Below, in pieces: positions 3,494 through 55,650 of a stretch of 64,000 nt of DNA (its first letter is position 1; every line of letters begins with the position of its first letter). The position numbers and the translations under genes were made by a program. Origin of the DNA: Eukaryota sp. TZLM1-RC (taxonomy: Eukaryota > Protista > Metamonada: BaSk clade); NCBI GenBank assembly GCA_040285825.1, contig JAUPSS010000003.1:744001-808000 (forward strand). Direction: 5' to 3'. The notes under the pieces were generated by a model. The model saw only the letters and a list, made by a program, of their open reading frames with translations. It was not told the origin of the DNA and did no database searches.

Positions 3494-4240
3494 ATAATTT
3501 TGGCCCTCATTGCAGATGTTTTTTACACGTGTAGTATCACCATTTCTTGTTTATGGAAGTGGATGAAGTTCAGGTGTTGCAACAACAGTGGAAGATCTAC
3601 AATCTGTTACACCGAAGAGAGACCTTTTTGTTGGAATCATTGGTACTCACAAGACCTGGGATTGATTCATCCGATGAGGTGTTTCTGGATTAATTGAGAT
3701 CCTCCACTTCGTTTTCGTCGTACGAGGAATTCAACTTATCCATAGCTGAGCTGAAGGTTGATGTCCGCAAGGGCGACGTCCGTGAACGTATGTTTTGTTA
3801 CCTGAGACGTTTTTTCAGGCGAAAAGAAGGGCTTTCGGACTGAAATTGCCTGACTAGCCTTCAGGATCAGATTCGGCAAAAGTATCCTTCCAGTAATATT
3901 GTAGAAATATTTGATTTCTCGAATTTGGGACGAGCTATTCCCCGTCTTTTCTACCTTGGTAAATACCACAGAGAATGAACTACTTGATTGCACGCGAGTA
4001 GTTTCTTGGAAAAGATTTTTAAAGACTGTTTCAGAAAATACTGACTCTGTGGGTCAAGCTGAAATGAAGTTTCGTTTATCCAATAGATCTCGCAATCTGA
4101 CTGACGGAACATGTTTTAAATGTCATCAGAAAGGTCATCTGGCTCATAATTGCTTCTCTAAAGTTAAGCCCGAAGTAAATCATTTCCATCACGTACCACA
4201 GTATATCACAAATTTCCTCTCTTCTTCATGCTAAAATTGC
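3494..4240 (+). pseudogene. gag fragment with CCHC zinc knuckle (family C, 3'-truncated)
   Basis: ORF 3911-4234 contains CFKCHQKGHLAHNC (CX2CX4HX4C). Confidence 0.65.
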
Positions 4241-4740
4241 TAAAATTGATACGAATGTACAGGCAGAATTGTTCAATAACGAAAAAACTTTGCTTCGTAG
4301 ATTTTCAAACATTACTGATAATTATCAACCACATTGTTTATCAGATCACAATTTAACCAACTTTGATTTACAAATTTTGAAAAAGCGTTTAAATTATTTT
4401 GATTTACCATTTCCCACTGTTCCAAATGATTCAACAATTAATGTACTCAGTCAACTTTTGCCAAAATGGAGAGAATTTGTCATCAGGGAAAATGGCTTTT
4501 ATCTTTAAGATACACTGGTATTTGTCAAAAAATTTATCAAAAACCAATATGATTATAGTTTAGGCAATTTGGCGTATGAAATGATTTATGAAAAGAAAAT
4601 GAAACTTCATCAACAATTTACCAATATTTTACCAATTGAGTGTTTAGCCACTGCTTTACCTAGACATAATTTAATTCATTATGGGCTTTCTTATTGTAGA
4701 CCATGTCTGGAACTCCTTTTTTGTTCCAAAAAGAAAAGTT
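4241..4740 (+). pseudogene. Family-B DNA polymerase-type 3'-5' exonuclease domain (Exo-Fanzor locus 1)
   Basis: NEKTLLRRF...QPHCLSDHNLTNFDLQILKKRL (ExoII), DTLVFVKK...YSLGNLAYEMIYEKKMKL, and LIHYGLSYC (ExoIII, Asp position replaced). One in-frame stop at 4506-4508. Confidence 0.7.
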
Positions 4741-5149
4741 TATTTTGCCATTTCTTAAAACCATTCGTGCAACCGTCAACACAATGGTTAAACAGTCAAA
4801 TGTTTTATTGAAATTGAAAGAAACTGCTTCAAAATTTCAACAGTTACGAATACACACTACACACTAAATGTTGCCCTGAAGCTTTATTTACAGTACCGTT
4901 TTGAACGCAACTTATCACGTATTTCTGCCAAATTGTATGAATCATTGATGCAAGAATTCGTTATATCTCAGATGATCTTTATGAGCAACAAAGGGAAAAA
5001 CCGGAAAGTGCAGTTCCACAAAATTTGGAGGAGTTTGTATGTGGTGAAGGAGTTTATACTTTGAAAAATAGCTTTCAACAAAAAAAGTTAAAGAAAACTT
5101 TGAGTTATTTTGACCACTTAAAACACAAGTCTGATCAGTTTCCACGACT
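4703..5149 (+). pseudogene. Fanzor1 N-terminal fragment (locus 1), truncated at the Gypsy A1 junction
   Basis: FLKTIRATVNTMVKQSNVLLKLKETASKFQQLRIHTT, then after a frameshift ALKLYLQYRFE. This fits the Fanzor1 N-terminal pattern and aligns with ORF 53427-53747. Confidence 0.5.
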
Positions 5150-16769: not shown

Positions 16770-18380
16770 CTCAAGTTTGAGTTTGCTTCATGGTTTCATC
16801 ATCTGTGGATTTATTTAGCTTTTAATTCTTCTGCTTAACAAACTCAAATTTTGGGATCTTGTGAGCCTTCCGTAGCATTAGATTTTTGTCGTTCCTTTAA
16901 TTTATTGAGAACAGAATATTTTGCTGATTTATCGGATGTAGATCCAGAAATGTTGAAAAATCACTTTTTTCGGCAGCAACTTCTGGAAGTGTTAGTTCCT
17001 AGATGCAGTCCTTATTTGAATGAGTTATCCTGTGAGCTAGAAAGATTGCCACCACAAATCTGGTCAAATATTTTCCCCAATCAATTCAAGAAATTCCGAT
17101 CCGATCTCTTTTCAATTTGCAGTTTTGCTGTGAAAAGCGTCAACAAATACTGTCTCAAATTTTTGAAAGCTTGTATTTTGATGTTGTACTTGGCTTGGCC
17201 AAGAAAAAGAATCCCACTTTTGCAAATCTTTTACAAGATATTTTGAAAATAATATTTATTTATAAAAAGACTTATAAATCAACATCTAAATAATGCATCT
17301 CTCCCAAAACAAAACAACGAAATGCAACTCTCTTATAGTGAGATCCAAGAGAAAGTAAAGCATCAGAAACCGTCTTCAACATTTCCTTAATAGAAAACAC
17401 AATTTTATTTTGCCAAAACAATCTGTTGAAATTTCTGTTGGTTTTTCTCTTTACAATCATTTCAAAATCTACCAAAAATCGTATAGACGCGGAAGCAAGT
17501 GAAATAATATAAAGAAAAAACAAATGGATACAAGTTGTATTTTGCATGCTGTTGGGTGTACATGTGTGAAAGTACATTTGCTGCTTTAGTAACAACCAAT
17601 CCTCAAGTTTATGGCACTCTCTCAACTGATTCTAACTGGACTTTGAATAAGAGACTTCGTTCCTTTATCTGGCCTGATAATTTACCTCATAATCTAATTT
17701 GCAAATGTACTCGAAAAATTAGAATTGCTCACTTGTTAAATTGTGAACTTTTTATTACTTTTAGAAGCAAGATTCATGATACTTTCAGAGATTCGATTGT
17801 TTTGTATGTGTAAGTCTCATAAAATTGAATCTTTTTTGGAACCACTGTTGTCAAATCTGTTTGATGCTGAAAATTATTTTCATAAGAATAATAGAGGTGA
17901 TGTCATATTACCTGCACTAGATGGAACCTTCTTTTTAGTGGATGTACTGTCTCTTGATCCTTGTAATGCCTCAAATGAAAGGCTCACTAATTCTGAAATT
18001 CATAATCCTCTTTCAAATGCTGAAAATTTCAAAATCAAAAAATACAGTGAACCTTTGTCCAAATTGTCCAGCCAACAGCATGAAAAATACAATTTGCATC
18101 CATTTGTATTTTCTCTATTTGATTCACTTGCTCCCACTGCTGTACGCTTTTTGGCAGTTTTTGAAATGATTGTAAAGAGAAGAACCAACAGAAATTTTAG
18201 CAGATTGTTTTGGCAAAATGGAATTGTGTGTTTCGTTGTTAAGGGAATTTTGAAGAGGGACTCTGATGCTTTGCTTTCTCTTGGTTCACACTATAAGAGA
18301 GTTGCATCTACTTGTTTTGCTTTGGGAGAGATGGATTATTCAGGTGTTGATTTATCAGTTTTCTAATAAATACATATTAT
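16770..18380 (+). mobile_element. Truncated RLE-type non-LTR retrotransposon with a nested inverted 3'-end copy
   Basis: PSVALDFCRSFN, AALVTTNPQVYG, CKC...HLLNC...RSKIHD, EPLL...RGDV...VDV (RLE), and AATAAA at the 3' end. Confidence 0.85.
17246..17560 (-). mobile_element. 3'-end fragment of the same RLE family, inserted antisense inside the element above
   Basis: Reverse complement of about 18070-18380 (FEMIVKRKTNRNFNRLFWQNKIVF...HYKRVA). Confidence 0.8.
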
Positions 18381-41279: not shown

Positions 41280-41900
41280 AATAACCAACCTTTTTTGCCT
41301 GATTGCTTTTCAATTCTAATATTCAAGTCACTCAAGAAGGTCTTATAGCTGAACCTGTGGAAGACTATGATGAGGAAGATGAAGATGATGATTCAGACCA
41401 ATGATCCTTCAATTCACTCCAGCCAAATATTGGCAGTGACCCAATAGTTACGATTTCATGTGGTGTTACCTCAACTCAGAAACACATAAATGAGTCTAAC
41501 GTTTATTATCATTTGTTTCATTGGAATGAAAATTCTTTTATTACATCAAGTTCAACAACAGAACACAGAACAGATGAATTGCAGATAATAATTTCGTTAT
41601 TCAATTGCTTATCATCAACTCAACCTGATGTTATTGTTGGATTCAATTCAACCTTATTTGATCTACCGTCAATATATGCACGGTTAGAAATATTAGGTTC
41701 AGGTGTTGCAAATTTCGAAACAAACAAATTGAAAGGGCATTATCTTACCCATTATGATAAGAAGTTTAATGGTCCAAATATGTTCGATCTTTTTACTGTT
41801 ATTCAGGATAAATTTCTAAAATCATAGGTGGGAACAATTTAAATAATTTTTGGGCAAAAAAATACAGTAATTCCAGCTGATAAACATAAGTTAACTGAAA
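41280..41900 (+). pseudogene. PolB-type 3'-5' exonuclease domain (Exo-Fanzor locus 3)
   Basis: SDPIVTISC, DELQIIISLF...PDVIVGFNSTLFDLPSIYARL (ExoII), FDLFTVIQ. Confidence 0.78.
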
Positions 41901-42119
41901 ACTTTTCTTATGATTCGGCCTCACGAATCTCCAAATGCGAATTTGAGGTTCCTTCCCCCAAAAAAATAGACCAATTCTTCCAAAACTCAATTAAATCACA
42001 ACATAGAGAACAACATAATCAATTCAATTCAAAAGAAGAAACCTGTTTGGTAAAAATTATTTCACAAAACAACAAAAGTCTAGGGATGTTTATTGAAGTG
42101 ACGACTCAATGGAAAAATT

Positions 42120-43272
42120 AGCATCTTTAATTCTAAAAGATTAGTTGCAGCAGATCCAAATGAATATGATATGATTCATGCTGTTTCAAAAAAATTAAAC
42201 CAAGCTGATTGCTACACAAAACTTTCAATTGATAAAGATGAAGTTGAGCAGAATGAGGAAACAAACCACAGAAAAAGTGCAAAAAAGAAGACATTCCTAA
42301 TATTGACTCCTTTTTTACTCAAGGTGAACGAAATTGTTCGCTAGGTTTTTTAAAAAATCGGAAAGATGCAAAGAAACGGCAAGATGAATACTTCTTCCAC
42401 GGCAATACGGAAAGTCATAGCGGGAAAATGAGGAAACAATCAAAATCAACCATTTTAGAGGAATTTTGTGAGTAATTTAATGCAAAATCAATGTTATAAT
42501 CAAAACTTGGAATTTTATAACCAAGAACAATATCGAAAACAAAGGTTTTCTCACCACATCCTCTTAACAAAAAGGTAACATGAAGCTCATCCGGAAAATT
42601 AACCAAAAATTTGTCAAACCTGGGGACTACATCTAGTGATCACTAGTGACTGGGACTAAAGAATCAGGTTTGGAAAGTAAACAAAAGTACCCATCTGAAG
42701 GTACAACACAATATAAGAAAAGTATTGACACAAACCAATTACCCTGTTTAGTTTATGAGGCATTTACTTCAAAAAGATGTCATAAATGTAGAAAATCAGA
42801 CGGGAGATTCATGTAAGAAAGAAGAATTGGAAGTTACATATAGATTAAAATAATGGAAAAAAGGCAAAAAAGAAAGCAAAAGTAAAAGAGAAATTAGAGG
42901 AAGCAATGAAATCAAGAGAAGGCTTAGTCATAGAAATGAGTAAGAATGAACCAAGACGTCAAGCAAAAGCATTAGAAAGTGTAACCAACAAGAGGATAAG
43001 AAAATGAATTTCAAAGGCTCTTGGAAAACGATGAATTGGGCAACTATAAAGTTCGTCAAGTAGTTCCATGGGGTCTGAGGCAGTGTAATCAATGCAAAAC
43101 GATGTGGAATCGAGATACTAATTATGCTCTAAATATTCTGATGTTGGCTGAAGACATTCTGGATGGAAGAGAGAGATCAGAGGTGTTGAGGAGACAACAG
43201 TCTCAAACAAATGTAATTGAACCCCCTGATGCAAGCCTGAAGAACCAAACCTCAATACATTATCACGAGTAG
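42120..43272 (+). pseudogene. Fanzor1 nuclease remnant (locus 3), heavily degenerate
   Basis: LVAADPNEYDM (RuvC-I), VITSDWD, YEAFTSKRCHKC (RuvC-II plus zinc finger), GLRQCNQCKTMWNRDTNYALNI (RuvC-III). Confidence 0.8.
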
Positions 43273-44887: not shown

Positions 44888-45922
44888 CTAGGCTCTTTGT
44901 AGGTTTACTGGTCTATCTCCAGCTTTTACATGTGCTTCCATCACTTTAACATATTGAACGACTATTTCTATTTCTATTCCACAAACTTTTGCATGATTTA
45001 CACATCGTAAGCCCGTGACGAATAGACATCTCATGCCTCTTCCATCGCTATGGATTGCTGCACAATCGAAATGTTTCAACTGTTTTCTCCGCTTTCTCAC
45101 AATTGAAACAACAACTGTTTCGAAAGTCGTCAATTAAAAAGACCTTATAACCAGCCTTTAAATAAAATTCTCAACTCTTTTCCCTTGGTAGGTTCTTTGA
45201 ATTTCATGTGTTTTCGTTGTTCCCAGTCTCCAATTCCAATAACTACTTGGCTGGCATCACCATTTACTGATTTGAAGCACTGAATCATTTTTGCCTCAGA
45301 TCTTGTGCGAGTGATCTCAGCCCACCGTCTTAGTTTCCTGAATATTTTTTTGATGATAGATTTCACCAACAATACTATTCACAAAATTCTTTTGTTTATT
45401 ATATGCCGTAAATCTATCAAACCTGCAGCTTTTGGAATTGAATTGGGATAAAGTTGCTTCCCATTCTGCTACAGATTTAGTTTTTTGTTCATTCTTTCTC
45501 AAATTTAATGAGTAATCAATTTCGTGGGGAATATTGATTTCTTGAGGTACTTTTCCTCTTAATAAACTAATTGTTCTTTCAGTCATTTGATTAATTATAC
45601 TGCTGTTTAAATGCATCCTTTGTTGTTGCTCTTCATTTGGTTCATAATTGGATAGATCAATCACTCTACCAGTAGAGTTACTTATTGTGATCAGAGTGTC
45701 ATTCCGTTTGCTGTCTCTTATTCTTTTGAATTTGGAACTTTTCGACTCAAATTTTCGTTGATTTTGAGTGTACCTGAAATGAACATATTTATCTCTTTCA
45801 GGTTTTTTTGAATAAGTCATTCCAGTAGCTAAATTCTCAGAAAAATAGAGTAGATCAGATTTCCCTGGATCAGCAGCAGCAAGGGTCATATCTTGGAATT
45901 CAGAAGGATTGATGCTGGGATC

Positions 45923-46057
45923 TGATGCTTTATGCATATATGATAACAAAGAGTAAGGATAATTTATTAGAATTTCACCGGCCCTTATAAAGGCCATCAC
46001 TAGTGAACTATGTTATATAAATATAAATGTACTAGACTAATTGTCCACAGTACAACA
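45923..46057 (-). repeat. 3' LTR of Gypsy A2 (135 bp)
   Basis: TGTTGTA...AGCATCA; direct repeat of 52657-52792. Confidence 0.93.
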
Positions 46058-49000
46058 CTACCTTTTCCCTCTCTTAGGTCTCGAACGAGAGCTACGAGTA
46101 CTGACTGCAGGGGAATTAGTCTTAGATTTGGAATTAGAAGATGCCTTCCGTTTCCTGGTAGTGTGAGGACTAGTAGAGCGCAAATATGTTTGATATGCCT
46201 CAGTGCTTTTGACGTCAGCAACTGGGACAGACGAAGTCTCGCCGCCATACCAAACTGCAATACAATAAGGAACTTTATTATTGTTCGAATCTACGTAATC
46301 AAAGTGATCTATAATTTTAACGATTACAGATTCTTCCATATCGCCAGCAGCAATATTCTTATGCCAATCAAGATCATCTTTAGGGAAGTCTAAAAGGTAT
46401 AGTTGACAATGATTTATACTTGCCGTAGACATCGAACCAGTGACGAGATTCTTGAGTAATAAACTTTTATTGGATTTAACTTCTTCAACGAGAAAAGGCC
46501 CAGCGAAGCAACCATGGAGTTTACCATTAGTCTTTAATCGCAAAACTAAGTCACCTTTATTAAAAGGGTTCCTATGTTTGTTAACTTCAGGCAGTTGTTG
46601 AGCTTGCCTGAGCTCTGCCTCTTCTCTCTTCTTTGAAATCCTTTCAAGTTTTGCTTCAAGATCTTTAACAAAGGGAATATTAACATTAGCTGATTTTATT
46701 AGTTCAAACATATTACTAGGATCAGCTCTAGGGCTGTGGTCGCTACCAAACATTAAATTGTAGGGCGAATGACCAGTAACTCTACTAATAGTTGAATTGA
46801 TTTGAAGTTGTACAATTGGGATATATTCACTCCAATTGCTATAATCGCCAGAGTCCACCAAAATCTTTCTTAGACTTTGTGAAATGTCTCTGTGTCGTCT
46901 TTCTACTAATCCATTGCTTTGTGAAAAACTAGTTAGTGAACAACTTACTTCAATGTTTAATAAATCGCATAACCCTTTGAATATGGCATTTGCAAATTCA
47001 ATACCATTGTCACTATGAATCACCAGTGGGATACCAAAAATTGATACTACACTCCATAGGAGGTGATTGGTTGCCTCCACTGCATTCAATTCCTTTGCAG
47101 GGCAAATGATCGTATACCTAATAAACGAATCTACAAAAACTACTAAATATTTGAATCCATTATCATCTTGTTGTAATGGTCCAATAGTATCTGCGTTTAT
47201 TCGTGCAAAAGGTCGATCAGCCCAAAGAGAGCCAGATGATTCAATGACATTTTTAGGCACATGTGCCGTCTTTTGACATGCTGGACATCTCTTAATGTGA
47301 TTAATCATGTCTTTGCGCATGTCGGGCCAAAAGTAATCACTATTAAGTAATTTCTTTACGCTAGTCGTCACACTAGGATGGCCAACATTTGCATGTCCAT
47401 GAATGATAGTTAAAGTCTGCTTCTTTAAACTATCTGGGATAACAATCTTCCCACGATTGTTGGTATACAATTGAATATCTGAATTATAATTGTAATCTTT
47501 ATAATAATTAGGATTTGAATCAACATCTATAAGTTGTTCTTGCCTAATCTTTGAGATCCAAGTGTCAAATAAATCAAATTTAGTATCCTCAACTGCTTCT
47601 TTCAGTGCAGATAAGTTATTGATCGTTGGTAGCTCAATTGTGGACGGTTGAGTAATATCATCCCTTAACAAATTAACTCTAGTTAATAAATTTAAATAGG
47701 GTAATTGTTCTTCAACTCTGTGAGGTGCCAAGTTTCTCACTTGTTGGACTCGAGGAGTTTTGGGTTTGGTATCAACCAATCTAGACAAAATGTCTGCCCA
47801 ACAATTCTCCTCGCCTGCAGTGTGGACTACATCAAAATTGAATTCTGACAATGTTGGTAGCCACCTCTTCACAATTCTGTTCTTTTTAGGAGCTGATATG
47901 AGGTATGCTAAATTTCTATGATCAGTGAAAATAGTTAATTTCCTCGAAATTAAATAATTTTCTAAACTACTGTCAGTGAGAATTAGTAAAATTGCATACA
48001 ACTCTTTCTGAAGTACAGACCAATTCTTTTGTGAAGTTGATAATAATCTGCTAAAGAAGGCAATAGGTACAACCTTTCTCTTAATTAGCGGTGTCGTAGG
48101 ATCTTTAGGTGGGTTAGCTTCTTGCCATATTACTCCACCTACAGCCACATCGGACGCGTCAGCTCTTATTAAAATATGCTTGTCTTCTGAGGGCAATTCA
48201 AGAGGGATATTTGCTTTGATAAGATTTACAATCTTACCAAAAGCCTCGTCATGATGAGGAGTCCACTTGATTTTTGACGGTTTGTTTCTAGTTAATTTGT
48301 TGATTGGTTCTATCAAGTCAGACAAATTTGGCAACAAGTCACGTATATAATTGATTGAACCTATAAAACTCCTAACTTCAGGTAATGTCCTGGGTTTGGG
48401 TAGGTTGATCAGTCCCTCGATCCTAGATTCATCCATATAACGGGTTTTGTTTACAAAAATACTACCTAGAATTTTTATTTCATGTTTGCAAGTGGTAAAG
48501 CTACACTTGGGTAGGCCCAGGTTAACTCTAAAACGTTTGGCGCGTTCTAGGACCGTACCTACTCTGGATAGAAATTCATCCAGGGTCGAAGCTACTATTA
48601 TTATATCATCGATATAAATAAATACGCCCTCAGAATCAAATATTTCCATCATCATGTTTTGGAAGACTGCAGGAACGTTCTTCAAACCAAAACAAGCCCT
48701 TTTAAAACTGATCGACATCCCAGGAATTGATACGGTAGTTTTATCAATATCCTCTTCTGCAATTTTGAGCTGCCAAAATGCCTTAGGTAAATCTAGAGCT
48801 GCTATATAATTAGCTTTACTTAGAAACTCTAAAATGTCGCTAATCCTGGGCAAATTTGCCTCTACAGGTTTAGTTAAATCATTTACTCCACCAATACCAC
48901 TAAAATCGCCAGTTAATCGTGGTTTCCTGTGATCAGGGTAAATCACAAGACAGATGGGACTACTGAATTGAGACTTTGCGGGCACAGCAAATCCATTACG

Positions 49001-49231
49001 GATCAATTCGTTAAAAATTTCCTCGGCTACCCGTTGTTTTTCTGGGTTTAATCTTCGAGGTTTCCTTTTGACGACCTTACTTTCGTCATAAAATGGAATG
49101 GTCATCGGCTGACAATCAAATCCATCCAGGTGAGGTAGCCCACTAAATACATTTCTATATTTTTCGAGTAGCACGACTAGGCGTTCCTCGTTTCCTAATG
49201 TCATCCAGGCATATTTCACAGCCCAACTCAT
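46058..49231 (-). CDS. Gypsy A2 pol (RT, RNase H, integrase, chromodomain-like)
   Basis: YIDD, ADASD, HHCC, D,D35E; C-terminal VIVKIIDH...AVWYGGETSSVP. Confidence 0.93.
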   Translation of the reverse strand: MSWAVKYAWMTLGNEERLVVLLEKYRNVFSGLPHLDGFDCQPMTIPFYDESKVVKRKPRRLNPEKQRVAEEIFNELIRNGFAVPAKSQFSSPICLVIYPDHRKPRLTGDFSGIGGVNDLTKPVEANLPRISDILEFLSKANYIAALDLPKAFWQLKIAEEDIDKTTVSIPGMSISFKRACFGLKNVPAVFQNMMMEIFDSEGVFIYIDDIIIVASTLDEFLSRVGTVLERAKRFRVNLGLPKCSFTTCKHEIKILGSIFVNKTRYMDESRIEGLINLPKPRTLPEVRSFIGSINYIRDLLPNLSDLIEPINKLTRNKPSKIKWTPHHDEAFGKIVNLIKANIPLELPSEDKHILIRADASDVAVGGVIWQEANPPKDPTTPLIKRKVVPIAFFSRLLSTSQKNWSVLQKELYAILLILTDSSLENYLISRKLTIFTDHRNLAYLISAPKKNRIVKRWLPTLSEFNFDVVHTAGEENCWADILSRLVDTKPKTPRVQQVRNLAPHRVEEQLPYLNLLTRVNLLRDDITQPSTIELPTINNLSALKEAVEDTKFDLFDTWISKIRQEQLIDVDSNPNYYKDYNYNSDIQLYTNNRGKIVIPDSLKKQTLTIIHGHANVGHPSVTTSVKKLLNSDYFWPDMRKDMINHIKRCPACQKTAHVPKNVIESSGSLWADRPFARINADTIGPLQQDDNGFKYLVVFVDSFIRYTIICPAKELNAVEATNHLLWSVVSIFGIPLVIHSDNGIEFANAIFKGLCDLLNIEVSCSLTSFSQSNGLVERRHRDISQSLRKILVDSGDYSNWSEYIPIVQLQINSTISRVTGHSPYNLMFGSDHSPRADPSNMFELIKSANVNIPFVKDLEAKLERISKKREEAELRQAQQLPEVNKHRNPFNKGDLVLRLKTNGKLHGCFAGPFLVEEVKSNKSLLLKNLVTGSMSTASINHCQLYLLDFPKDDLDWHKNIAAGDMEESVIVKIIDHFDYVDSNNNKVPYCIAVWYGGETSSVPVADVKSTEAYQTYLRSTSPHTTRKRKASSNSKSKTNSPAVSTRSSRSRPKRGKR

Positions 49232-49979
49232 CTAACTCATGTCTAAATGTGGAATGCCCAAAATCATTACCTAAGTCTGATTTATTACTCAATTGTTCTA
49301 TGAATCTAATTGGTTGACAAATTCTATTATCAAACTCACATTCAGCATTTAAGATGGTGCGATGTTCGCGATCCAAATTAATATTAAAACCGTGCTCCGT
49401 GCGTAGCCCCAAGGTTTGTAATAAGTCTCTTCCGATCAAAAAATTATTGGTACCAGGAATGATCTGGAATTCGATCCTTAAAAACACTTGAGTGGCCAAG
49501 CTACCCACATTTAGAGCAAGAACACCACATGCACATCCCAGGGTCGTGGAGCGAATACCATTTGCCGATAAGTATTCGACAGTTTTATTGTCATTAACTG
49601 TCATATTACATTTAGAGGCTAAATCCCTTGATAATACTGAAAATGCAGCTCCAATATCAATTTCGCCTTGTACTTCCACGTTATTTATAGTGCAGGTTAA
49701 CCAAAGTTCCCCGTTAGAAATTTCTTGGTCCTCTGCTACCCTGGATAGTCTAACACTGTGGATAAAACCCACAGGATTGGATGACTCTCTAAATCTTTTT
49801 AATGGATTTAGGTGATTATAATTCGAATCTGCTTTGCTCATTTTATAAATGGATTTGATTGAATTATTTGTAAGGTTATTGTTAAAAGATGTATAATCAT
49901 CTGATTTATTACTACTACTTTTACGTTTTCTATCACGTTTTTCGCCTCCTTGACGCTTTTTTGAACCAGGTTTTCCCAC
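49155..49979 (-). CDS. Gypsy A2 protease region
   Basis: IDIGAAFSVL and LIGRDLL; frameshift to pol near 49190. Confidence 0.85.
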   Translation of the reverse strand: MGKPGSKKRQGGEKRDRKRKSSSNKSDDYTSFNNNLTNNSIKSIYKMSKADSNYNHLNPLKRFRESSNPVGFIHSVRLSRVAEDQEISNGELWLTCTINNVEVQGEIDIGAAFSVLSRDLASKCNMTVNDNKTVEYLSANGIRSTTLGCACGVLALNVGSLATQVFLRIEFQIIPGTNNFLIGRDLLQTLGLRTEHGFNINLDREHRTILNAECEFDNRICQPIRFIEQLSNKSDLGNDFGHSTFRHELDELGCEICLDDIRKRGTPSRATRKI

Positions 49980-50021
49980 TAATTTAAAACATTTCTCTTC
50001 AGGATGTTTATTGGTTTTGCA

Positions 50022-52650
50022 TTAGTTACACCATTGCTCTGAAGGCATGGGTCGACTGCTTACTCTACGGTTCTTAAAAGGACCTTTTGACTGGCTTCGT
50101 CCTTTTTGCGCAGGAGCGTGAGCACCAAAAGCTGTTCTTATCAAATTCATGTCTTTGATCGAGGATTCAAGGCTATTGACCTTGTTAACAAATGCGTTAC
50201 CTAAATCGTAAATCGCATCGCCCAGTTTCTCGTTACTCGAATCAAACTTGCCAATCCAAATGATATATGTGTCCATCAATTGATTGTTTGTTTTGTCGTT
50301 AATAGTTTCGAGAAATCTCTTTGCTGGGTAGACGACAGACGGATTACCATCCGTTCCGGGCATAATTGTAGAGCGTCGAATTATATATATGATCTGCTCT
50401 ATGAAGGCTGTCCATGAAGATTCAGCAGTCATTCTGCGACTGATCTCAGGTGGTCTTACAGACCTTAAAGCCTTCTCAACATTGGTAGGGTATTTGTACT
50501 GGGTGCTGAGTAGCAAATATTCCCAGATTTCGGCGTCAGATGGGTTGTTGCCTAACACGTTTGTTCGGCCTCCATAAAAACTCTGCCATTCTGCGATGAC
50601 CTTACCCTCGATCATAAATCTCAAATACAAAGGGTCCACTTCGAAGAACATAGATCTAACGAAGTCGTACTGATGAACAGGTTGACCGTATTTGGTGATC
50701 GGCGTAAATGCTCTGGTGGGTCCATCGCGATCCCTAACTGTTTTAGCCCAATTGCCAAAGTTAAGAACGAAGTCGAAGATCTTCTTGGCGTCAAACGCTT
50801 CATTTAACTTAACTAGGCATCTGAGTTTGTCGTCTATTCTTTTCCTCAATTTCTCCTCGTCTGTTACAGGAGTTCTATAAAGACCGAGGGTGTCAACGAG
50901 AGAATCTCTAGGAGCATTCGTTCCTAGGGGTTGCGTGGGTGTAGATGATTTTATAACAGATGCTTGTGTAGGAGTTGCTTCACATGAAGCTCTCCTAGAT
51001 GCCAGAGGCCCTACAGAAGGTGTACTAAGTAGGTTCATATTCCTCTCTTCTGAAGGCAATGTTTCGCCCAACTTGATGATAAATCGTGTCTTAGGAGGTT
51101 CCTCCTGCACTGGTACGGTCTGGGCTGGTGGCCTTAAATCCACCCAATCTGGTGCATCTTTAGATCCTCTAGGGACCCCTGCTAGTTTATGATCATATGG
51201 AAGGCAACTGCTCTTTATTAAGACATTCTCAAAAACATTTTGGTCGGGCCAGCTATCAACCCATGCCTTAAGTTTTGCCATCCATGCATCAGGGTATACT
51301 AGTTTTAACTTGTTGGGGCCAACACGTTGCTCTTTCAATTCAATTACCCTTGTGCCTATTTCTCTAATATAGGACTCTTTGGTATGAAATTGAAGGGTGT
51401 CACCTCGAGATTCATCGAATCTGCCCCCAAGCATAATAAAAATGTCCGCAATGGAATCTTTTGGGTGTACGTTCTCCACTAGGAAATGCCTTACGACGCC
51501 TCTAAGGTTTCTACCTTGTTGATTATGAGGGTACATTTTAGCTATCCAAAATAGTTTGTCGTAAGCCTCTTGATTTCCACTGAAATATATTTTGTGGTCA
51601 TCAATCGCATCCCTATGCCATTTGGCAGGCCTGGGAGTAGCAGCTTGATACTTTGAACGAGGAGCACTAAAATAGCAACCCTCGACTGCACTCATCCCAC
51701 ACGAGACTACCGAATCGGTAAGATCATCCAATCTCTTTAAAAGATTTGGACTCTGATCATAACTCTCGTAGACGTCATCGTCAAGTGTTTTGCCGTGGGC
51801 TTCCCCAAAGAGAAAGGGCCAACGTTTCGCTAAATAGTTACGTCTGACCTTCTCACATTCGGCTGGATCTACTTCTCCTGAGAGGCGTTCTGCCTCATTC
51901 TCAGCCATTTTTAGTAATTCATCATCACTCCAATCTAATTACATCATCAGGAGGATTGGCGATGAGATCCAATAGGAAATCTCTAGTTACAACCTTAACT
52001 GCCTTTGCTAGTTTCCTTCGGTAAAGACCCTGAGAAGTCCTTTCCGTAGATGGGAAACTAGGAGTTGGATTAGGAGGATTGGGTGTATGAGGTGGTTCAT
52101 CATCGCTCTCATCCCCTCTCCTGCTGTAGTTCTGATTAAGAGATCCTCTGGAATCACTTTGAGGTTCCTCACTTGAGCTGATGTCAGAAGTAGGTGAGGA
52201 GGGAGTTTTACGTGAGGAGCTAGTCGTAAACTGTTGCTCGCCTTCGCCTCCTTCACCTTCTGTACAAGCGTCAGATTTATTACTTACAACAAACGCTTTG
52301 AATCTCCGTTGCTCGCTCGGAGTGAGAAAACTCTTCCTACAAGGAAGGAGCTCCGAGGAGTTATTGGGATATGTGTACAGTTCTGTCACATCCACAACGT
52401 GGTTATCTCTCTCCTTATTAGGGAGGTGACTTCCTTTCTGGGAGGAAGGGCTCTCCTCAGTGTGAAGTTCACTCTCCTTATTGAGGAGGTGGCTTTCTTT
52501 CTGAGAGGCAAGGCTCTTCTCAGCGGAAAGCTCACTCTCCGTAGGTGGAGGATTACTCACCGTGGGTGGTGTATTGTTCTCCTTCAAAGAAGGGACATTA
52601 CTCTCCCTTAGAGAGGAAGGAGGGTTATCATTGTGGCTTTTCAGGCCATT
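50022..52650 (-). pseudogene. Gypsy A2 gag (long; frameshift near 51935, premature stop at 50022)
   Basis: ORFs 51925-52683 and 50022-51908 join through a frameshift (DWSDDELLK-MAE). The stop replaces the CSLCK seen in copy A1. Confidence 0.78.
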
Positions 52651-52656
52651 AATTAA

Positions 52657-52792
52657 TGATGCTTTATCCATATATGATAACAAAGAATAAGGAATAATTT
52701 ATTAGAATTTCACCAGCCCTTATAAAGGCCATCACTAGTGAACTATGTTATATAAATATAAATGTACTAGACTAATTGTCCACAGTACAACA
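52657..52792 (-). repeat. 5' LTR of Gypsy A2 (136 bp)
   Basis: Followed on the minus strand by TTAATTAATGGCC. Confidence 0.93.
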
Positions 52793-53771
52793 GATCATCA
52801 ATATATTTTTCTTTATCTTTTAATTCTTTTGCAGTTACTTTGTACCTTTTCAAGTCCATTCTAGATTGAATGAAACTGACTGCGATTCCATCAGTCTCGA
52901 TACTAGACATGATGTACTTTGAACTTTCTGAATAAAGTTTAGTGTTTTTAATCCTATCCATTTTCAAAAAGGTATTCCATAAAACCAAATCAGCAGCTTG
53001 ATTATTGCATTGGTAAGACGACCTTTGACGAAGAATGTCCTTGAATTCGACAAAGAACAAGTCCAATAAACTTGGCTTGTCAATTCTGATATACGAGGGA
53101 ATACAAGAATTCTTCAAAGGGAGAGCATGAAAGATATTGCTCTCCTCATCTTCTAAATAATTATTATTATAAAACATTGCCCTCAAACACAACTTTGATT
53201 TTGATGAAAATCAAATTTTGAATACTTTTCCCTTTTGGAATTACTGGGAAGTAAAAGAGGGATGCGGTCATTAGTGAAAAGCGAAGTAATTGATGAGACT
53301 TTTTTTCTCATTGTAGAAGTTTCGCCAGCAATATCTCTACATCCTCCAAGAAGGAGAGATTTAACTTTGCTGATGAATGAAGAGAAGTTTTTCTTATCTT
53401 GCTTTTTCAGGACATTGTTGTTTCTATCAACATCTCAGTGGCAGACAAGGAGAATTTTGCAAAGCTGTTTTTGTCTTTGCGTTTAGGGAACTTGCCTCCT
53501 CACTTTGGGACGTGACCACAAGAAAAGTGTCACGAAATAATTGGGTTTCAATTTCTGGTAAAAAATCGTTTGGGTTTATGTCAAAAAGATGCAAATAATA
53601 ACCACAAATGAATTCTAAACCAACAATAGAAATTTCCGGACACCTAATTATTGCCTCATCGATCACGTCAAACATTTTCGGATCTCTGATGACATTTTTT
53701 AGACTGTCTTTACAACCATCATAAGATTTATATTTAACAGTTTCCATGAATTGGTCATTGTTAAAGAAATT

Positions 53772-55460
53772 TCATAAAAAATTAAATAATTTCATTGTTA
53801 AATCTGTATCCCTCAGACAATGAACTGCAACTGCAGTTCTTCTTTGGAATAATGAAAAATCTGAGAAGGGGTCATCTTCTTCAACCTTCCAATACTCTGC
53901 CATATACTGAGGATCAAGATCAATTTTACTTTCCCCTAATAAAATTTTAGAAACTGTGTCTAGTTTGCGTGGTTGACAATAATTTGTGTAAATACTACAA
54001 GTATCAACAACAAATCGGCCAGCAATTAAGGGGTTCAAGTGTTTGTGGTTCAATTCTATTAAATTTGAGTTATAGTATTGAACCCATTCACTAGCATCGA
54101 TTTCACCCTTAAGAAATTCCTCATTTTCAGAACGTTTCATAATATTTGGGATGTCAAATTTGAAAATATTGAAACCACATATTATAAGAGGATTATAAGC
54201 TTCTGATAATTTAAATGAACTTAGCAATTCTTTTTCAGAGTAATGATGATATAAAGTGATATTTTCATCATCAACTTTGCAATAATGTTCATTTCTGCTT
54301 GTTGACTTTTCTACAAGATCACAAAAACAAAGATTTAATTCAATCTGTACTCGGGTAAAAATATGAGAAACAGAATTTGCAACAATCTTTCTTGTCACAG
54401 TAAGAAATTGAATTTTCTCTTGAAATGACAATTGTTTAGACCTCATAACTGTGCTTTTTTACCCAACATCACAGTTTCAATGTGTTGTCGCTGCAAGAGT
54501 GTTGTTACGCTTTCCCATATTTTAAACTGTAAGTATTTTATAACTTATCGCTCAATTGTTCATGACTCAGTTCGTGATCAATTATATGCCATGTGCAAAA
54601 GTTTCAATATAGAGGCATTTATTGAGCCACTAGTACGTAAGCTGTCTTCAGATCAAACTGATGATTCTTTTGGTAAAAGAAGGGCAGATTTAGTAGCTCC
54701 AGGGATCGATGGTGTTCTCAATGTTGTAGATGTTGTCTCCGTTGATGTTTGCAAAAATTCTGCTGCTCGTTTAGTGTATTTCGCTGATTCGCCGTTATCT
54801 TACGCCGAAAAAAAGAAGATAAAAAAATATGAAGAACCTTTGGCACAGTTAGGTAGAGTGGAACATGTGAAATATCAGTTTGTGCCGTTTGCAATTTCTC
54901 TTTTTGGCAATATTGGACCTTCAGGCTTGCACTTTTTGGAAAATTTTAAAAAAGTGTTACTGAATAGGTCTGGTAAAACAATGAACTCCACTTTCTGGTT
55001 AAATAGAATTGTTTTTTGCATTTTCAAGTCTATTCCTACAATGATTTCAAAGGCACTTTTAGCTATCGGTGTAGAATATGAACGTAATGCTGTGAGTAGG
55101 TTCAGTAATAGTGACGCTTGTTTGGAGGATATTGAATTCTAGATGGTTATTTTTATCTCAATAAATATTCCAGTTTTTTTTTAAAAAAAAGTTTCAATGT
55201 CAAAATGTAAAATTCTTAGAATAAATGGTGTTTGAACAGTAAAATTAATGCTTTCATGAATTGTTGTGTCGAGTCAAAGCATTTTCATTGAAAAGTGTTA
55301 TTACACGTTTCAAAGGTGTACTCAATGCATCAACTTGCCCATTTCTGATTGTCTTTTGTAGACAGGAGGAATATTTTGTCTCAAATAATTTTCTTTTATT
55401 GTCAACACAACTATAAAAACATCTTCTAAAGTTAATGAAATGTTCACAATATAACAAATA
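53772..55460 (-). pseudogene. PolB-type N-terminal plus 3'-5' exonuclease domain (Exo-Fanzor locus 4), split by an RLE insertion
   Basis: PFILRILHFDIET (ExoI, at about 55191-55230), SEKELLSSF...PLIICGFNIFKFDIPNIMKR (ExoII), GRFVVD, KLDTVSKILLGESKIDL, HCLRDTDLT (ExoIII). No polymerase motifs follow. Confidence 0.88.
54438..55190 (+). mobile_element. 5'-truncated RLE-type non-LTR retrotransposon
   Basis: CRC...HILNC...RSIVHDSVRD, EP...RADL...VDV, KK.KKY. AATAAA then a T10A8 tail; GTTT duplicated at 54434-54437 and 55191-55194. Confidence 0.88.
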
Positions 55461-55489
55461 TATAATTGTAGATTATGACTGAATTTAAA

Positions 55490-55650
55490 TGAAATATTAG
55501 GTCAATATTCAGGTCATTTTAAGGAACAAAGTTTCTTCTTCAAAGTTCAAGAATCAATGATGAGAGGGCCATGAACTTGCGGAATGGTTGTTACTAATGC
55601 AGAAGACATACTTAATCTGTATTCAATGTTGCTAGTTTTAGATCTACAAT
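55490..55650 (-). mobile_element. Old RLE non-LTR fragment
   Basis: SSALVTTIPQVHGPLIIDS matches AALVTTNPQVYGTL of the 16770-18380 copy. Confidence 0.5.

Follow-up and report, generated by a model that had tools for sequence, protein, structure and literature searches.

Organization of the locus

The window analysed here is a stretch of 64,000 nucleotides (nt) from assembly GCA_040285825.1 of TZLM1-RC, the type strain of the soda-lake metamonad Skoliomonas litria (PMC11603281). On the minus strand of this window, positions 44890-55273 hold a dead copy of a mobile-element gene, in which the remains of an exonuclease domain of the kind found in family B DNA polymerases (PolB; the domain is hereafter Exo) are followed by those of a Fanzor1 nuclease (Table 1). 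The copy bears two retroelement insertions, frameshifts and altered catalytic residues. The first insertion parts the ExoI motif from ExoII and ExoIII; small indels and a TAA were found by codon alignment to paralogs near the start of the Exo open reading frame (ORF), whose first ~20 codons are shifted in frame against the paralogs. The replacement of the catalytic Tyr of ExoIII by His is private to this copy. Further downstream, stops and two frame changes lie between 53430 and 53186, and the Fanzor segments at 52797-53434 are colinear with blocks C and D of the paralogs (by tblastn). The frame is then interrupted by a Ty3/gypsy retrotransposon flanked by a target duplication, GATC, at 52796-52793 and 45922-45919; when this element is removed in silico the sequence reads ...YIDD|PSINPSE, identical to the uninterrupted paralog L002:12621-13106. 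Beyond it, at least two frameshifts and a stop are present and the Asp of RuvC-III is replaced by Asn (WNRN). With the motifs AADPGK, FRNSCCFNC and WNRN and these frameshifts, the split RuvC triad is not kept in this copy.

The Exo ORF (54458-53775) and the first Fanzor ORF (53771-53430) occupy the same frame of the minus strand (frame 2). Between positions 53800 and 53745 this strand reads ACA ATG AAA TTA TTT AAT TTT TTA TGA AAT TTC TTT AAC AAT GAC CAA TTC ATG GAA ACT, that is, T M K L F N F L, the stop codon TGA (53774-53772), N F F N N D Q F, and an ATG (53747-53745) followed by E T. The initial annotation of this DNA had described the two ORFs as being in frame and separated by one TGA and eight sense codons (a 24-nt spacer), and minus-strand translation confirms this. 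An in-frame junction has a one-in-three chance of occurring by itself; its meaning here derives from the comparison with paralogs, not from the frame alone.

Table 1. Features of the dead copy, of two further loci in the window, and of unbroken subfamily 1 frames on other contigs
Feature	Coordinates	Strand	Basis or remarks
ExoI segment (...ILHFDIETFF; DxE motif FDIET), severed from the remaining domain	55184-55273	-	Frame translation; matches upstream and ExoI part of paralogs
Non-long-terminal-repeat (non-LTR) retroelement fragment, opposite strand, between ExoI and ExoII	54432-55183 (boundaries approximate)	+	ORF 54432-55142
Exonuclease domain with ExoII (GFNIFKFD) and ExoIII (HCLRD)	53775-54458	-	Pfam; codon alignment with lesions
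CAT (His) where the ExoIII catalytic Tyr is expected	53820-53822	-	Alignment: GTTCATTGT here, GTTTATTGT in four paralogs
12-base insertion AATTTTTTATGA containing TGA (53774-53772)	53772-53783	-	Alignments; absent from all four paralogs
Fanzor N-terminal segment (NFFNNDQFMETVKYK...), in Exo frame	53430-53771	-	Continuous with Exo in P0002, P0041, P0042 and P0043
Further Fanzor segments with two frame changes, including the IETDGIAVSF block	52797-53434	-	53434-53186 in frame 0; 53210-52797 in frame 2
Ty3/gypsy LTR retrotransposon within the Fanzor frame	45923-52792	-	LTRs of ~136 bp, 97% identical
Fanzor RuvC and zinc-finger part	44890-45918	-	AADPGK (RuvC-I), GIGDWEQ, IDDFRNSCCFNC, WNRN
Locus 1, subfamily 1 Exo-Fanzor junction	4179-4864	+	1-base deletion in T6 run 4717-4722; stop at 4506-4508; followed by a gypsy element
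Locus 3, third compact decayed unit	41405-43269	+	ExoII (GFNSTLFD), AADPN, zinc finger, WNRD
Subfamily 1 frame across the junction	L003:6369-7943		525 unbroken codons; DNA-verified
Subfamily 1 frame across the junction	L005:7875-9377		501 unbroken codons; DNA-verified
Subfamily 1 frame across the junction	L006:4770-6077		436 unbroken codons; DNA-verified

Domain identities

The Exo ORF of the window matches the Pfam family PF03104 (DNA_pol_B_exo1) with E = 6.7e-8 and 32.7 bits, above the gathering score of 23. A better-preserved paralog of 450 amino acids, P0043, reaches 57.5 bits against the same family and aligns with the catalytic subunit of yeast DNA polymerase delta (Pol3, PDB 3IAY; E = 1.9e-8), the homology stopping at residue 254, ...KLF, which is the exact junction. 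An AlphaFold2 model of P0043 was used solely to confirm the PolB exonuclease fold, since its mean predicted local distance difference test score (pLDDT) is 54, with the N-terminal half of Fanzor below 50 and the Exo half fair. In this model the ExoIII helix comprises residues 232-258, and a Foldseek search with it ranked family B polymerases highest, Pol delta (4.7e-11) ahead of UL30 of herpes simplex virus 1; the top values were ~5e-11. The catalytic motifs of these polymerases are well kept across the family: DxE (ExoI) in 15 of 16 proteins, NxxxFD (ExoII) in 14 of 15 and YxxxD (ExoIII) in 13 of 14. Together, these comparisons place the domain boundary, in all likelihood, directly after the ExoIII helix (...KLFNF|FNNDQF...).

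For the Fanzor part we used an unbroken piece of the same subfamily, L004:11807-12619, which matches the Fanzor1 structures 9CF0 (E = 2.3e-22) and 8GKH (E = 1e-18) over an alignment that spans GDWEQ, DEFRTS-C..C and WNRD. A piece of a second subfamily (subfamily 1; L003:8573-9133) matches the same two structures with E = 1.6e-17 and 2.4e-12, respectively. Fanzor1 proteins are characterized by D ... [TS][TS]xxC4 finger ... RD, i.e. an intact split RuvC triad (Bao and Jurka, PMC3627910), and the family shows this feature, with DPG, GDWEQ, FRTSCCCFNC and WNRD in the L004 paralog. The PolB-type exonuclease and Fanzor identities given in the initial annotation are thus both upheld by the Pfam, 3IAY and 9CF0/8GKH matches.

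The junction in paralogous copies

The subfamily to which the window copy belongs (subfamily 2) has four other members, on four other contigs: L001 (P0002), L002 (P0041), L003 (P0043) and L004 (P0042). Pairwise identity, with the window copy or between paralogs, is 83-92%, and all four gene models translate directly from DNA with no intron model. In the DNA alignment the four paralogs are nearly identical to the window copy around the site but lack the 12 bases AATTTTTTATGA, the placement of which is ambiguous by up to 5 bases; all four read KLFNFFNNDQFMETV without break, giving the stop-free junction TMKLFNFFNNDQFMETVK in the corresponding proteins. The longest unbroken frame across the junction in this subfamily, L003:9407-11350, has 648 codons and covers an upstream region, ExoI-III, the junction and ~190 residues of the Fanzor N-terminus. 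Stops and indels sit at different places in each copy, the pattern that independent decay of one long ancestral frame would leave, and the TGA-bearing insertion is one of ~10 private lesions in the window copy. With the 12 bases as an insertion, the ancestor of the 24-nt spacer would have been a normal coding stretch of 12 nt. No convincing source for the insert was seen when an origin by tandem duplication was considered.

These observations bear directly on programmed stop-codon read-through, in which a functional TGA decoded at low frequency would yield Exo alone together with some Exo-Fanzor protein. The matching frames and the short spacer fit such a mechanism; however, neither the four paralogs nor subfamily 1 has the TGA or the 12 bases that contain it, and the 111 nt downstream of the stop fold no better than shuffled sequence (z = +0.74, with 162 of 200 shuffles folding as well). 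The TGA has an A as its next base, to our knowledge not a leaky context, and the window copy, with two retroelement insertions and several frameshifts, is dead in any case. TGA is also a normal stop in this genome: the 24 longest frames end in TGA (10), TAG (9) or TAA (5), and none of the three occurs inside these frames of up to 1657 codons. The genetic code is the standard one. We therefore regard read-through as extremely unlikely. The initial annotation had offered it beside a fusion with a decayed stop; only the latter survives, since the paralogs are open and the TGA is found in no relative. Decay as the source of the stop likewise stands, but not by mutation of a sense codon, as the TGA sits in the private 12-base insertion.

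Subfamily 1 provides a much more distant comparison. It includes a second locus in the window (locus 1), where the stretch 4269-4505 matches PF03104 with E = 4.1e-8, and although it has only 21% identity to subfamily 2, the two are colinear across the junction with no gap needed. Three subfamily 1 copies on other contigs read through the junction in long unbroken frames (Table 1), and the string ...LCLKLFVLFQKDKF.L.SYKTIRATV... recurs at identical spacing in nine annotated proteins of this subfamily, three of which are the DNA-verified loci. We consider it very probable that the window copy is what is left of an Exo::Fanzor1 fusion, in which one frame ran from a DEDDy exonuclease into Fanzor1 and the stop arose by decay, because in both subfamilies the frame stays open across the junction with identical spacing. 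The alignment of the junction across paralogs, which the initial annotation had put forward as the way to separate its readings, shows an open frame and no conserved TGA, and so supports a fusion.

The same comparison bears on the public annotation, which has a 224-residue protein ending at the TGA (P0001) and corresponds to two separate genes, with Exo ending at its own stop and Fanzor starting at the ATG 24 nt on. In favour of this, all five subfamily 2 copies keep the Met of FMETV, but as these copies are 83-92% identical its conservation carries little weight, and the matching position in subfamily 1 (LFQKDKFILSSYK) is not a Met. Moreover, the paralogs have no stop, so that Exo would have no end there, and a terminator plus a promoter would not fit into 12 ancestral bases. 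Two separate genes are thus improbable.

Locus 1 is itself broken at the junction. Compared with the paralog L003:6435-7943 it has one base fewer in the T6 run at 4717-4722, which puts CLELLF out of frame with LFQKEKFILPFLKTIRATV; an ATG is present at 4703. The initial annotation had predicted that one extra T in this run would restore the frame, and the paralog alignment shows exactly that deletion. Either the missing T or the 12 extra bases of the window copy could be errors of a long-read assembly, and the missing T lies in a homopolymer, a typical site of such errors. The 12-base insert is, however, not a homopolymer, and both the window copy and locus 1 carry many other independent lesions. 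An assembly artefact is thus very improbable here; if either lesion were an error, the frame would simply be open, in further support of a fusion.

The longest annotated protein of the family, P0050 (732 residues), at first seemed to connect Exo with RuvC-I in a single ORF but cannot be taken at face value: it is a spliced model in which a 32-base 'intron' bridges a frameshift (L006:6038-6077). The link from Exo to RuvC-I consequently rests on tiling overlapping unbroken frames of separate copies, L005:7875-9377 and L006:6038-7228. The public P0050 model describes a pseudogene with a false intron, and long annotated proteins of this family need to be checked against DNA.

Selection on the two domains

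We compared synonymous and nonsynonymous differences between copies by a plain Nei-Gojobori count; as the copies have also decayed neutrally, the ratios of nonsynonymous to synonymous rates (dN/dS) below are taken as upper bounds on constraint. Between the subfamily 1 copies of L003 and L005, dN/dS is 0.37 over 502 codons (39 synonymous and 62 nonsynonymous differences; P = 1.2e-5 for an excess of synonymous change). The value is 0.34 in the Exo part (24 and 36 differences; P = 2e-4) and 0.42 after the junction (15 and 26; P = 0.011). Subfamily 1 thus evolved under purifying selection both before and after the junction. Within subfamily 2, the window copy gives dN/dS of 0.51-0.59 against the other four (15.5-20 synonymous and 38.5-47 nonsynonymous differences; P = 0.018-0.05).

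Several points weigh against a fusion and call for some caution. No intact full-length gene was found, and a search of the family with P0050 as query gave nothing longer than 732 residues. The signal of selection in subfamily 2 is weak (P = 0.018-0.05) and absent past the junction, where few changes were available to count. In this subfamily an ATG immediately beyond the junction is conserved, which would be compatible with a separate start. As regards a possible trimming role, engineered fusions of TREX1, TREX2 and T5 exonuclease impaired the Fanzor MmeFz2 (PMC12923547). Finally, the window copy is an outgroup to the other four (dS of 0.11-0.14, as against 0.03-0.08), so that within subfamily 2 an insertion in the one lineage would look the same as a deletion in the other. 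The gap-free alignment to subfamily 1 at the junction favours an insertion in the window lineage; whichever polarity holds, the TGA is not conserved.

Region upstream of Exo and nested retroelements

The frame extends upstream of Exo in both subfamilies. In subfamily 1, a canonical 2A motif of the D(V/I)ExNPGP type, GDVEANPGP, occurs in frame with Exo at L003:6124 and in L005:7011-7871, and is followed, upstream of ExoI, by the basic stretch RKRRSNF. In L005 a single frame of 789 codons, interrupted by one stop, takes in the 2A motif, Exo and the Fanzor N-terminus. The corresponding site of subfamily 2 reads NENPLT and has no 2A motif. The upstream part of subfamily 2 (L004:8222-9712; L001:8699-9664) contains LSGGGQQ, GQHWVL and LYDCGIF, with an HW...DCG motif pattern. 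To us these strings are reminiscent of a cysteine protease of the Ulp1 kind together with its cleavage site, although we do not endorse a Ulp1/SENP8 label; L004:8222-9712 gave no sequence match in Pfam or the PDB.

The retroelement ORF at 54432-55142, which splits the Exo domain of the window copy, encodes a CCHC finger and a RADLV...D.V tail, and near-identical ORFs occur within other Exo-Fanzor copies, at L002:11698-12587 and L001:12277-13929. It has no Pfam match; judging by motif, we take the tail to be restriction-endonuclease-like and the element to be a non-LTR retroelement. Members of the same family were found in or next to four of the five subfamily 2 copies (window 54432-55183, L001:10746-13929, L002:11698-12587 and L004:7397-8053), at different positions and in both orientations. 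A preference of these elements for Exo-Fanzor loci could explain this, as could a great age of the copies.

Distribution and comparison with known systems

All the relatives that we found come from GCA_040285825.1 alone. An exhaustive search of a representative library with the Exo ORF returned only the window's own protein and one paralog; the other matches were true PolB polymerases, which indicates that this library holds no distant fusions of the window subfamily. Scans of Joint Genome Institute (JGI) metagenomes and of IMG/VR found no relatives. A full-text search of the literature for Fanzor with exonuclease, DEDD, PolB or proofreading yielded only engineering papers and reviews; the founding Fanzor papers mention neither an exonuclease nor a fusion, and Fanzor does not appear in the S. 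litria genome paper. A natural Exo-Fanzor1 combination was thus found in no paper, the exonuclease-Fanzor fusions in the searchable literature being all engineered.

Like the Fanzor1 proteins SpuFz1 (8GKH) and Parasitella parasitica Fz1 (9CF0), the Skoliomonas family has a C-terminal RuvC and zinc-finger region with GDWE, DEFRTS-C..C and WNRD, and it is likewise a multi-copy mobile-element gene in a eukaryote. It differs from them in adding an in-frame N-terminal DEDDy exonuclease domain of ~260 residues and in a frame that extends further upstream still, over a stretch that in subfamily 1 includes the 2A motif. With the exonuclease of family B DNA polymerases such as Pol delta (3IAY) it shares ExoI DxE, ExoII NxxxFD and ExoIII YxxxD; unlike those enzymes it has no palm, fingers or thumb, as the homology ends after the ExoIII helix and Fanzor comes next. 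The engineered fusions, in which TREX1, TREX2 or T5 exonuclease is joined to Cas enzymes or to MmeFz2, resemble it in that an exonuclease is tethered to an RNA-guided nuclease (PMC12923547), but they are man-made and use unrelated exonucleases, whereas the Skoliomonas one is natural, of PolB type and N-terminal.

One consequence concerns annotation: the short 'hypothetical proteins' with a PolB-exonuclease match in this genome are fragments of one long mobile-element gene, not cellular replication proteins. Another concerns design. Engineers tether exonucleases to RNA-guided nucleases to alter repair outcomes, and if selection has maintained a natural fusion in two or more deeply diverged subfamilies, evolution would have reached the same design, and the fusion would supply a compact template with a known domain boundary.

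Possible role of the exonuclease

Exonuclease domains of family B polymerases use two-metal catalysis to take nucleotides off single-stranded 3' ends. In the fusion, the intact protein would cut DNA at its RuvC site under omega-RNA guidance, and the tethered exonuclease would then trim the 3' ends exposed at the break. Such trimming would hinder exact re-ligation and could shift the outcome of repair in favour of the element, perhaps towards its retention or copying. The first of these steps follows the known activity of Fanzor1 proteins, which are omega-RNA-guided RuvC endonucleases (PMC10432273). Alternatively, the exonuclease might serve in 3' trimming of the guide RNA. As engineered fusions lowered the activity of MmeFz2, a benefit of tethering an exonuclease is not automatic.

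It is possible, though we would put it short of probable, that natural cut-and-trim effectors of this kind are active in Skoliomonas or were so until recently, with omega-RNA-guided Fanzor1 cleavage coupled to a covalently attached PolB-type proofreading exonuclease that resects 3' ends and so biases repair towards retention or spread of the element. With such an effector, the TnpB/Cas12 lineage would have its first natural RNA-guided nuclease that has an exonuclease built in.

Further copies and neighbouring features

The subfamily 1 protein P0046 (L005:8001-9380; 459 residues) represents a 90%-identity cluster of 42 sequences. Given the size of this cluster, subfamily 1 seems to have amplified recently. 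On L003, a subfamily 1 copy (L003:5797-9133) is followed within ~150 bp by one of subfamily 2 (L003:9287-12963) on the same strand, which suggests that one Exo-Fanzor element inserted at the very end of the other.

Other Fanzor-like pieces lie at L001:4083-5996 and L001:6571-6846 (minus strand). One of these is 55% identical to the C-terminus of locus 3, which indicates that the third subfamily, too, has further copies. Within the window, the 198 bp at 17570-17767 are 74% identical, in reverse orientation, to 55423-55613 upstream of Exo and may be the remnant of a fourth copy. At 223-915 the minus strand of the window contains an ORF with the motif SGGIDS, which we take to be typical of NAD synthetase (NadE-like); this ORF may be a bacterial-type gene in the protist.

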